From: Geosiphon pyriformis uo1
Taxonomy: Eukaryota; Fungi; Glomeromycota
Direction of reading: 5' to 3'
Assembly (NCBI GenBank): GCA_016748015.1
Contig: JAAOMT010000144.1
Location: 74,557-138,556 of the forward strand
DNA: 64,000 nt
The notes beneath the pieces are model-generated. The model was given only the letters and a program-made list of their open reading frames with translations. It searched no databases and had not been told where the DNA came from. This document shows positions 60,848 to 64,000 of this stretch, one piece after another (the first letter of the stretch is position 1; every line of letters begins with the position of its first letter). The position numbers and the translations under genes are program-made.

Positions 60848-61200
60848 ATGCGAACCTGGATATTTCCCTCCTTTGAGTAAATGGGACGACTGAAAAAAGT
60901 AAATTTATGACATAAAATTTATTACTCTGTTATATTCAAATTTTTGCAAAGTAAATTTCGTACTATTAAAGCAAATTTATTGATAAAATTTTTCCAAGAG
61001 TCTTTTAATATTCCACCTTTAAAAGAAACGTAATCGTATGACTTCCTTTTTGCTATTGAAATTATAAAAAAATGTGGCAAGCTCACTTAATATCCCAAAA
61101 CTAATGAAGAAAAGTTTTTCTGGGTATACGAGACGCAAAAACCAAGTGGATGGCTATGTTCATGTAGTCTCAATAGATCCTAGAATTCGCACTCCATTTA
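60848..61200 (+). pseudogene. TnpB/Fanzor-like RNA-guided nuclease pseudogene, 5' part up to RuvC-I
   Basis: MRTWIFPSFE*MGRLKK (cf. TnpB N-terminal RIYPT.EQ...L) at 60848. ETQNQVDGYVHVVSIDPRIRTPF with the catalytic Asp at 61176-61178 (DPG>DPR by G>A). Internally deleted. Confidence 0.75.
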
Positions 61201-63306
61201 CAGTCAGACCTCCATAAAAGAACCCTCGATAAAAGAACAACCTCTTACAAAGAACATTTTTTTATAGAACCAATTGATTAATTAACAATTTTCCCTTTAT
61301 ATAAGAACAATCTATAAAGGAACAAGAACATAATTTTATCAAAAATTTATTCGAAATTTACCTTCATATAAGAACAAATATCACGTGCTAGATGTTAATT
61401 GGTAATTGGGAAAAGAGTTAGAACGTATTGAATTGATTTCATCCTAACTTTCTTTTAAATCGATTTAAATTGGACTTACTCTTTTTAATCTTGTCTGTTT
61501 TCATGTACAGCCACTTAATCCCTATTGTATTCCAATTCAAGCTTGCTAAAACCAAATCTAATATTATCATTATAGGCACATTTTCTAACAGACTTGCTAA
61601 ATTATCACCTTTATTCAAAAAACAAAAATTACCGGCAGTTAATGATGCTCTTCATAAAGAAATTTGTCAATATACCAAAAATCACTATGGCACGAAACAT
61701 GATGATATTGTAGCTTACTTCAATCATAAATATCCAGAACTTCATATTTCTCGTGTCTCCAAGATAATCAAAGAGCATGCAAAGTGGTTGAATATTGGAA
61801 TTGATGAAATCTCAGAAAGATCTATTCGACACAAAAGCGTTAAATTTCCATTATTAGACCAAGCTTTAAGTTATTGGGTAGAACAAGTAACTGCAGCCAC
61901 TATTGAATTCAATGATCAACTAATTATAGAGAAAGGAAAAGAATTTGCCAAACTTCTTGGTATGCACGAAAATGAAATGCAATTCTTAAATGGATGGGTT
62001 CAAAAATTCAAAAAACCAAACCAGTTACGTGTTTACCAATTTCATGGTGAAGCAGGAAGTGTATCAACTGAAAGTTTACCAGAAGAAAGAAGAAAATTAA
62101 AAACCATTATATCTGAATTTGATCCTGCTGACATATATAATGCTGATGAAACAGGATTATTTTTTCGTATGAGACCAAATCAAACACTTGCAAAATGTCA
62201 AAATGCAGGAAAAAAATTGGTATATTATATTTACCAATTTTTATCGTTATATATTATTGTTATATTAAATTAATTGGGTTTTTTATAGGATAAATCTTGG
62301 ATTACAATTCTTCTTGCTACAAATTCAACTGGATCTCACAAATTGCAACCTTTAGTAATTAAACATGCAAAAAATCCAAGATGCCTTAAAGGAATTAATA
62401 CTTCCAAACTACCAGTAATTTACAAATTCAATTCCAAAGCGCGGATGCACTCAGATATATGGAAAGCATGGCTCAAATATATAAATGAAGGCTTTCGAAT
62501 TCAAAATCAGCACTTTTAGTTAATAATGCAACTTCTCATCATACTCAAATCGGAGAAGATTCATTCCAATTAACCAATATTACTTTGCACTATTTTCCTT
62601 CAAATACAACATCACATCTTCAACCAATGGATGCTGCATTATCAAATCTTTCAAAGGCAAATATAAGCATTTATATTGTCAACATATTTTACATCAATTT
62701 GAACAAAAAATTAATATTGAACAGTTAAGTAATATAATATATACAGTATTATTATCATTATATATTATATAATTTTATCTAATATTAATTTATTTTTTAG
62801 AAATAAATTAAACATAAAACAAGCAATTGATTATGTTGTTCAATCATGGTTTCAAGTAACACCTGTTACAATTCAAACCTGTTGGCAAAAAACGGATATT
62901 CTTTTCTATAATCAAGAATTAGAAATTCAAGAATCCGAAACATCAATTGCTATGGATATATTCAACAATTTACCATCAAATGCACAACAATTGTTCAAAA
63001 ATCTCGAAGATTATACTGTAGCAGTTGATGAATTATTGGCAACTGAAAATATTCTTGATGATAATTAAATTGTAGATATGGTTTTAGCCGATGCTCAAAT
63101 TGAAACCAATACAATTAATGACTCGGAAAAAGAATTAGAAGAATCTCCACCTGCTATAATTACAATTACAGAAGCATTAGATTTGAAGAGCAATTAGCAG
63201 AAGAAAATTTTGGTATAGAAAACCAAAATTACTTAATAAAAAATTATATGAATACGAAAAAATGAAGGAAGATTCTAAAAAACAGGTAACAATTAATCAA
63301 TATTTT

Positions 63307-63339
<33 letters not shown>

Positions 63340-63462
63340 TGATTGATTTAATAAATAAATATAATTTATTTGATAATAATTATAAAACTTTATAATAGAA
63401 CACCTCTAAAATGGAACATAATTTGCATGTCCCAACTGTGTTCTTTTATAGAGGTCTGACTG
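61201..63462 (+). mobile_element. pogo/Tigger-type DNA transposon, structurally complete (2262 bp), transposase inactivated
   Basis: TIRs CAGTCAGACCTC(C/T)ATAAAAGAAC, 22/23 identical (61201-61223 and 63440-63462). TA duplicated at 61199-61200 and 63463-63464. Subterminal AAGAAC repeats. Confidence 0.96.
61620..63070 (+). pseudogene. CENP-B HTH plus DDE_1 transposase with two spliceosomal introns (62220-62288, 62724-62800); frameshifted
   Basis: FPLLDQALSYW, FLNGWVQKFKK, HGEAGSV, IYNADETGLFF; after the intron DKSWITILLATNSTGSHKLQPLVI...NPRC; LLVNNATSH (second Asp to Asn); FPSNTTSHLQPMDA; AIDYVVQSW...TIQTCW. Ends approximate. Confidence 0.88.
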
Positions 63463-63952
63463 TACATGGTATTCTCCAACAAAAGATGTGGGCAAATAGG
63501 ATCTTGTGACATCAGTCATATTGTTCGCCTCTGCAAATTTATGAATGACCTTTGCTCAAAGAAAGATAAATTAAATACCTGCTCAAAACATAAGAAACCT
63601 AAAGCCAGAAAATTAGAAAAGGCGATTACGTGCATGCATCAAAAGATCTTATACTCGCAAACAGAAAGGCTGTCACAGTTTTCATTCACGAATTTGATGC
63701 TATCGTCATTCCTCCCTTTGAGGTATCGGACATGGTGGTCGAAAAGCACGCGAAAAACAGTTAGAAAGATGATATGCTGATTTCGTCAACGTCTGATCAT
63801 CAAGGCAGAGTACCGAATTATCATCCAAAATGAGGCTTATTTGTAAAACGCCGGAATTTGTTATGGATAGAGATGAAAATAGCGCTCGGAGGATCTTCCT
63901 CCGGACATTGCTTGATGGAGCAATGCTTATTAATGATGTTCATGTGAATTAA
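63463..63952 (+). pseudogene. TnpB/Fanzor-like nuclease pseudogene, 3' part (bridge helix region, RuvC-II, zinc ribbon remnant, RuvC-III)
   Basis: Across frameshifts: TWYSPTK / IGSCDISHIVRLCKFMNDLCSK...ARKLEKAITCMHQKI / RKAVTVFIHEFDAIVIPPFEVSDMV / RKTVRKMIC*FRQRLIIKAE...IIQNEAY / MDRDENSARRIFLRTLLDG...TAA. Confidence 0.88.
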
Positions 63953-64000
63953 TAAATCTTTGTGACTCCTTCCCCATTTAGCATATATTTTAATTAATTT

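Follow-up and report, generated by a model that had tools for sequence, protein, structure and literature searches.

A dead Fanzor2 copy nested with a pogo element

Near the 3′ end of a 64 000-nt stretch of the genome of the fungus Geosiphon pyriformis (assembly GCA_016748015.1, contig JAAOMT010000144.1, positions 74,557 to 138,556 of the forward strand; this whole 64-kb stretch is called the window below), we found the remains of a gene for Fanzor2, the eukaryotic TnpB-type RNA-guided DNA endonuclease. With a probability that we put at about 0.93, window positions 61066-61200 and 63465-64000 constitute a dead, 5′-truncated copy of an IS607-like transposon family of G. pyriformis, the cargo of which is a Fanzor2 with a rearranged RuvC site, and a pogo transposon inserted into this copy at a later time. 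The genome has at least 80 decayed copies, the window copy among them. The latter is an unremarkable relic of a known type, without present function, and the pogo element nested with it is itself defective.

The two flanks of the insertion as one sequence

A preliminary description of the locus, made from the sequence alone, had proposed that a pogo insertion at 61201-63464 splits a Fanzor/TnpB gene. The insertion is borne out by its inverted ends, by the duplication of a TA dinucleotide, by at least 15 end-to-end copies of the insert and by the existence of at least 14 empty sites; the peptides quoted in that description were likewise all found in their places. Removal of the pogo element in silico restores VVSIDPRIRTPFTWYSPTK. 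Elsewhere in the genome (the G. pyriformis assembly, 128.3 Mb in 792 contigs) at least 14 paralogs have the uninterrupted site CCATTTACATGG, and the empty site CCATTTACATGGTATTC, with a single TA, is likewise present in at least 14 of them. When the genome was searched with each flank, dozens of paralogs were found to have both halves directly adjacent, and none with non-adjacent halves was seen among the paralogs examined. Moreover, single blastn alignments obtained with the pogo-excised sequence span the junction, extending from 61075 to 63810 with 70-82% identity, and excision raises the tblastn alignment of the junction to intact relatives from 33.5 bits (E 1e-3) to 49.7 bits (E 1e-8). Both of the checks that had been suggested at the outset, i.e. 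a colinear match after excision and contiguity of the two halves in the paralogs, thus turned out in favour of the proposed split.

The available reads are DNA runs of one sample, probably the assembly's own, and they are therefore consistent with the assembly rather than independent support for it. Contig depth is about 73 in the unique flank and similar in the relic, and it reaches thousands in the pogo element; short contigs extend 26-27 nt over each junction, just below the 31-nt rule used for bridging.

Assignment to Fanzor2

A Pfam search of the relic pieces of the window gave no match, the pieces being too short and too broken, and the identification rests instead on the paralogs and on intact relatives. 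An exhaustive profile-free search with the 170-aa open reading frame (ORF) of a paralog brought 3237 relatives, one of which (P0001) is 100% identical to KAG9307454.1 of G. pyriformis. The best match of the same ORF among solved structures is the mimivirus ‘TnpB-like protein L79’ (PDB 9b0l, E 3.9e-11), followed by Cas12f and TnpB structures. Four intact relatives, all single ORFs as intact relatives are in this family, were aligned to the window by tblastn: P0017 (647 aa), P0024 (463 aa), P0170 (487 aa) and P0177 (from Cetraspora pellucida). Their last ~215 residues are colinear with the window (residues 433-647 in the case of P0017), with a summed E against the whole window of 1.7e-29 for P0177 and 2e-23 for P0170; elsewhere in the 64 kb there was no further tblastn match to them. 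P0017 carries PF12323 and PF07282 and matches L79 at E 3.5e-17; PF07282 is also matched by the paralogs and PF12323 by relatives. Taken together, these colinear matches, and L79 as the best solved match of the family, substantiate the nuclease type, Fanzor or IS607 TnpB, that had been proposed for the locus.

Fanzors are defined by a RuvC-I motif with DPG, by a Pro or Gly replacing the canonical RuvC-II Glu and by an alternative Glu located six residues before the first CxxC (PMC10530073, PMC10711439). All three features are present in paralogs and relatives, as DPG, IPPF and the alternative Glu. The latter stands six residues upstream of the first CxxC in paralog L006 (NEVYTSKTCGCCG), in NEAYTSKTCSWCG and also in P0017 and P0177, and the motif around it in the family is E.YTSKTC. 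As for the window copy, it keeps Asp 61176, IPPF, Glu 63832 and Asp 63872, with the non-acidic Pro at the canonical RuvC-II Glu position. The rearranged RuvC layout that had been read from the window therefore agrees with the published Fanzor signature in its essentials, but not in two details, because the zinc ribbon of the window copy is deleted and its DPG is now DPR.

Among known systems, the Fanzor2 proteins of mimivirus (L79, i.e. ApmFNuc/ApmFz2, PDB 9b0l) and of Naegleria lovaniensis have in common with the family the DPG of RuvC-I, the Pro at the RuvC-II Glu (IPPF), the alternative Glu at its distance of six residues ahead of the first CxxC, the PF07282 zinc ribbon and a RuvC-III of the form DRD..GA..I; the relatives also have an N-terminal HTH_OrfB_IS605 and a serine-recombinase gene upstream. 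Among solved structures it is L79 that the family matches best, and the nearest named full-length matches include a Naegleria protein. However, identity between the Geosiphon (or wider Glomeromycotina) clade and Naegleria is only about 45-50% over the RuvC half and the match to L79 is weaker (E 3.9e-11 with the paralog fragment), while the window copy itself differs from these systems in that it consists of the last ~215 codons in broken frames, with DPR for DPG and without zinc ribbon. The pro-Fanzors (Yoon et al. 2023, PMC10711439), prokaryotic IS607 TnpBs that have both DPG and the alternative Glu, have their active-site layout and their pairing with a serine recombinase in common with the family. 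In the RuvC half, IS607 TnpBs of cyanobacteria and Chloroflexi share 46-50% identity with the Cetraspora relative. The Geosiphon copies differ from them in being multi-copy, in residing in fungal chromosomal contigs and in forming a clade with fungal sequences apart from the bacterial ones. Finally, canonical TnpBs of IS200/IS605 (ISDra2; PDB 8bf8, 8exa, 8h1j), which P0017 matches at E 5e-9, belong to the same RuvC fold family and have the zinc ribbon, but they have the catalytic Glu where the family has Pro, and D-hydrophobic-G where it has DPG (PMC10711439).

Truncation and decay of the window copy

The 5′ piece of the relic (61066-61200, + strand), delimited by paralog DNA matches and tblastn, comprises the last part of the REC/WED-RuvC linker together with the RuvC-I motif VVSIDPRIRTPF, and aligns to residues 433-466 of P0017. 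Its catalytic Asp is the GAT codon at 61176-61178. This Asp is kept, but the DPG has become DPR by a Gly to Arg change, whereas the paralogs have GATCCTGGC, that is DPG, and the relatives SIDPGVRTPFTWYSP; in addition, 14 nt were lost after 61141 in comparison with 24 paralogs. All 40 DNA matches of paralogs to the window begin at 61066-61093; the homology begins at about 61066-61075 and not at 60848 as first thought. The paralogs have about 1 kb of further upstream sequence in common, and a search for this 5′ part of the family showed that it is absent from the entire window; consequently, about 245 of the ~460 codons are missing, including the WED/REC/HTH part (HTH, helix-turn-helix). What is retained amounts to the last ~215 codons, or about 47% of the ORF, and the N-terminal WED/REC part with HTH_OrfB_IS605 (PF12323 in the relatives) is gone. 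The flank upstream of the relic is unique in the genome.

The 3′ piece (63465-63952, + strand), traced through three frames by means of the ORF list, of tblastn to P0017, P0177 and P0170 and of paralog indels, opens with TWYSPTKDVG. A 1-nt deletion after 63493 creates a premature TAG stop at 63497-63499, and the peptide GQIGSCDISHIVRLCKFMNDLCSK comes between this stop and a 10-nt deletion after 63660. At 63693-63737, FDAIVIPPFEVSDMV, which aligns to FDVIVIPPFDASEM of P0017, has P in place of the canonical RuvC-II Glu. The 24 paralogs reveal further deletions of 1 nt after 63738, 5 nt after 63746 and 5 nt after 63774, and a premature TGA stop at 63778-63780 is the former Trp codon of ...CWAHYRF. 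The alternative Glu is the GAG codon 63832-63834, inside QNEAY, but the CxxC normally found after it is deleted: a net loss of 62 nt at about 63846 (in comparison with L012, L006 and L013) has removed the whole CxxC...CxxC zinc ribbon. The RuvC-III Asp, which in this type of nuclease follows the second CxxC at a distance of 4-8 residues, is the GAT codon 63872-63874, held by MDRDENSARRIFLRTLLDGAMLIN; the stretch MDRDENSARRIFLR around this codon aligns to MDRDVNGARGILLR of P0017, and the stop of the piece is at 63950-63952.

All three acidic RuvC codons pointed out in the preliminary description are indeed kept, the Glu codon being in a different frame from both Asp codons. There is, however, no continuous ORF (three frames, TAG at 63497, TGA at 63778 and several indels), and the breaks that are independent of pogo are found in at least seven places; with its 5′ truncation, the copy is therefore far from the hidden gene merely split by pogo that had been envisaged. 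The differences between the window copy and the family show a mild GC-to-AT bias. Repeat-targeted C>T hypermutation was considered as a cause of the decay and rejected: C>T and G>A together account for 18 of 40 differences, a proportion similar to that in other copies.

The Geosiphon family and its non-coding 3′ tail

The idea that the lineage hosts a Fanzor family is amply supported by 82 genome matches to PF07282 (Cas12f1-like/TnpB zinc ribbon, TNB domain) and by 447 first-look candidates with P0017 as query. In contrast, the expectation that intact copies may exist elsewhere in the genome was disappointed. None of the PF07282 matches lies in an open frame of more than 183 aa (all 124 candidates scored), and with P0017, for which 68 of the 447 candidates were scored, every listed match covering more than about 250 query residues has internal stops; no intact copy was thus found in the assembly by either search. 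Nor were there annotated Geosiphon proteins among the matches listed for P0017 (356-1132 aa) and P0177 (219-696 aa; best 120 of 1470). At three loci (C621:3344-4828, C694:572873-574189 and C699:428610-429554), open-frame values of 439-542 aa were listed, yet internal stops were reported for the same matches; if a less decayed copy exists, these loci are where it should first be sought. Geosiphon also has a second, separate Fanzor2 lineage, represented by L001 (C701:385596-386183) and L003 (C404:445313-446116). It is the least decayed one seen, a single stop being present in 200 codons, and its place is beside a chytrid (Borealophlyctis) protein, outside the main Geosiphon clade.

Fragments of a serine recombinase (SSAKQKEDLE.., DIGSGVNFKRQGLKTLLER..) are found upstream of the nuclease ORF in paralogs, and this makes the family IS607-like and not a solo nuclease gene. 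Such decayed IS607 tnpA relics lie directly upstream of the ORF at L022:2047-2217 (- strand), L051:422-660 (+ strand) and L026:2614-2867 (- strand), and serine-recombinase relics also occur at C649:450176-450481 and C783:2607-2912, two genomic loci beside Fanzor copies. In pairwise comparison, the upstream fragment of L022 matches the Resolvase-bearing Scutellospora protein P0229 at E 1e-12. Pfam gave no match for the recombinase fragments of the paralogs; the genome has three PF00239 matches, two of them at Fanzor copies, and several relatives combine Resolvase with TnpB (TNB) domains. Fanzor2 is known to occur in such an IS607-like arrangement. The upstream serine recombinase (TnpA) is a feature of the family only, since it is absent from the truncated window copy. 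A Resolvase domain was also suspected in the N-terminal 190 aa of P0017, but Pfam found none there, and this region reads an alternative frame of a decayed tnpA. For this reason the N-terminal extension of P0017 is likely a gene-calling artefact, the real nuclease being of about 460 aa. Residues 1-190 (L067:56-625) resemble out-of-frame translations of the Geosiphon recombinase relic.

Family copies have sharp common 5′ and 3′ ends. Alignment of eleven paralog 3′ ends showed that the family ends in ...GTTACAATCCATCCG, after a non-coding tail of ~57 nt. The tail appears better kept than the ORF in local alignments (examples are L044:881-960, L046:973-1048, L030:1305-1382 and L037:1448-1504, all on the - strand), although short alignments favour high identity and this is only a lead. 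The motifs ACATAG[C/T]AATG and TGCCTAT are common to the 3′ tail and the 5′ end of the family. Judging from its sequence, the tail is a candidate guide-RNA scaffold or recombinase-binding site.

Could the window relic, then, still be useful as a non-coding ‘ghost’ element that keeps a 3′ guide-RNA (fRNA) scaffold and the right end and is served in trans by a live Fanzor? The sharply bounded and seemingly well-kept tail of the family would suit such a role, as would the fact that relatives transcribe guide RNA from the 3′ end (PMC10530073). We nevertheless consider it highly improbable. The tail of the window copy is its worst-kept part and aligns poorly to the paralog tails, there is no matching 5′ end upstream of 61066, and the genome searches with PF07282 and P0017 did not find an intact nuclease to serve the relic. 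What lies at 63953-64000 (+ strand) is a decayed remnant, barely recognisable in the alignment of the eleven paralog ends, which runs into the contig end at 64000; the decayed copy hence continues to this point, beyond the end at 63952 that had been assigned to it. The contig itself ends at this decayed tail (window 64000 = C401:138556), and the assembly break is probably in repeated DNA.

The pogo insert

The insert is a defective pogo DNA transposon (Tc1/mariner superfamily) located at 61201-63462 (+ strand), as judged from its inverted repeat, Pfam matches and full-length copies; with the right TA, it spans 2264 bp (61201-63464). Its 23-nt inverted ends are CAGTCAGACCTCCATAAAAGAAC at 61201-61223 and GTTCTTTTATAGAGGTCTGACTG at 63440-63462, with TA on both sides: the left duplicate of the target site is at 61199-61200 (strandless) and the right one at 63463-63464, where the empty sites of paralogs have a single TA. 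Since its ORFs match HTH_Tnp_Tc5 (Tc5/CENP-B-type HTH, E 1.6e-7) and DDE_1 (E 1.6e-8) in Pfam, the insert can be ascribed to pogo. Its borders are fixed by at least 15 other full-length copies in the genome (88-94% identity), which align end to end from base 1 to base 2264. Inspection of the sequence places transposase exons at about 61470-62219, 62289-62719 and 62792-63290 (+ strand), separated by two short GT..AG introns, 62220-62288 and 62720-62791, that were judged by eye. Deletions of 11, 6, 7, 1, 22 and 1 nt, private to the window pogo in a comparison with five other copies, make it defective. The features of fungal pogo/Fot1-type Tc1-mariner transposons are thus present, i.e. short inverted ends, TA duplication and a transposase with CENP-B/Tc5 HTH and DDE_1, but the transposase is broken by these deletions and by frameshifts; the ORFs of the five other copies are broken as well (6/6 with that of the window). 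The pogo family is very abundant, with a summed contig depth in the thousands against about 73 for the unique flanks.

Phylogeny, relative age and origin

In a quick maximum-likelihood tree of the RuvC half (58 rows), the window copy falls in a star-like, unresolved clade of 12 Geosiphon copies (support of 98 in the Shimodaira-Hasegawa-like approximate likelihood-ratio test, SH-aLRT). This clade is nested in a wider group that includes Cetraspora, Gigaspora and metagenome ORFs (SH-aLRT 95), and an enclosing clade (SH-aLRT 99) also takes in Diversispora, the P0017 group, a chytrid and the second Geosiphon lineage (L001, L003). The cyanobacterial and Chloroflexi TnpBs are placed outside the latter clade, which makes a recent gain from the Nostoc symbiont unlikely.

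The more general proposal that the stretch is bacterial TnpB DNA, be it contamination or a recent transfer from the Nostoc endosymbiont, has in its favour that Geosiphon houses Nostoc, that ‘pro-Fanzors’ have been placed in cyanobacteria (PMC10711439) and that the bacterial IS607 TnpBs are as similar to the Cetraspora relative as stated above. We give it very little credit, because the pogo that splits the relic is eukaryotic, bears introns and is present in the genome as a high-copy repeat, at least 80 relic copies are spread across many large fungal contigs, the copy groups with other Glomeromycotina with the bacterial sequences outside the SH-aLRT 99 branch, and the relic is covered by reads to the same depth as the unique fungal flank. 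As for the notion that the frame changes are introns, and that the locus is a live intron-bearing Fanzor gene with its 5′ exons further upstream, eukaryotic Fanzor genes can indeed have introns (PMC10530073) and the ORF list alone cannot separate introns from frameshifts, but its chance is negligible given that the frame changes are 1-, 5- and 10-nt deletions relative to the 24 paralogs and not GT..AG inserts, that there are in-frame TAG and TGA stops, that a 62-nt deletion took the zinc ribbon, that 5′ homology is absent throughout the window and that the intact relatives are single ORFs.

We are thus left with a dead, truncated Fanzor2 copy, and a few points weigh against this reading. The transcriptional silence of the relic is an assumption. 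The full-length P0017 scoring covered 68 of the 447 first-look candidates, with some longer copies (C621, C694 and C783:2563-4313) outside the inspection. The serine-recombinase fragments of the paralogs examined are too decayed for Pfam thresholds, and the tree is a quick search in which the Geosiphon rows are read-throughs with X at the breaks.

Family copies are 70-82% identical to one another, and the window copy departs from the family majority in 40 out of 480 well-defined columns; pogo copies are 6-12% apart. From these figures it follows that pogo is the younger of the two, the order being Fanzor burst, pogo insertion and decay of both. The proposed history would then be that the Fanzor2 family spread in a burst, that the window copy came to retain only the last ~215 of its ~460 codons, that pogo inserted at a TA within the RuvC-I coding region, duplicating this TA, and that both relic and pogo continued to decay. 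By analogy with the characterised relatives, in a live member of the family the nuclease would take up an RNA made from the 3′ end of the element and cut DNA that matches it, and the serine recombinase encoded upstream would move the element.

We do not expect such a live copy in Geosiphon itself. Intact ORFs of 460-650 aa that belong to the same clade are, however, found in metagenome and run assemblies, the closest of them in the runs SRR15128685, SRR17222375 and SRR31320655. One intact relative, P0168 (646 aa, L069:4592-6532), lies in a dense, intron-free contig of 47% GC, where a gene only 0.75 kb away (L069:7274-7726, - strand) reaches 36.8 bits, against a cut-off of 27, for the Nucleocytoviricota minor-capsid P11 C-terminal domain. 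The context is thus probably that of a giant virus, which hints that giant viruses carry this clade. It is a speculative and rather unlikely idea, but giant viruses of early-diverging fungi may also possess the Glomeromycotina Fanzor2/IS607 clade, some members of which may still be live. A scan of IMG/VR with P0017 gave no match and is uninformative, as the method seeks only near-identical peptides.

Significance

The window locus by itself is of minor importance, being a dead fragment for which the nested pogo provides a relative date, and our knowledge of how Fanzors work is unchanged by the finding. At the level of the family, G. pyriformis and, by homology, also Cetraspora, Gigaspora, Scutellospora and Diversispora have a sizeable IS607-like Fanzor2 family, which standard annotation labels ‘hypothetical protein’ or misses. 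This family is absent from the literature that we searched: there was no mention of Fanzor, IS607 or TnpB specifically in Geosiphon or Glomeromycotina, and the names of five Glomeromycotina genera looked for were absent from the supplements searched. Its description should be useful for repeat annotation of arbuscular-mycorrhizal genomes, and it points to the intact relatives as possible compact genome editors. If the clade were shared with giant viruses, these would have carried an RNA-guided nuclease family to or from arbuscular-mycorrhizal fungi; the nuclease clade would be an unexploited one, with the well-kept 3′ tail of ~57 nt as its guide-RNA scaffold or recombinase site.

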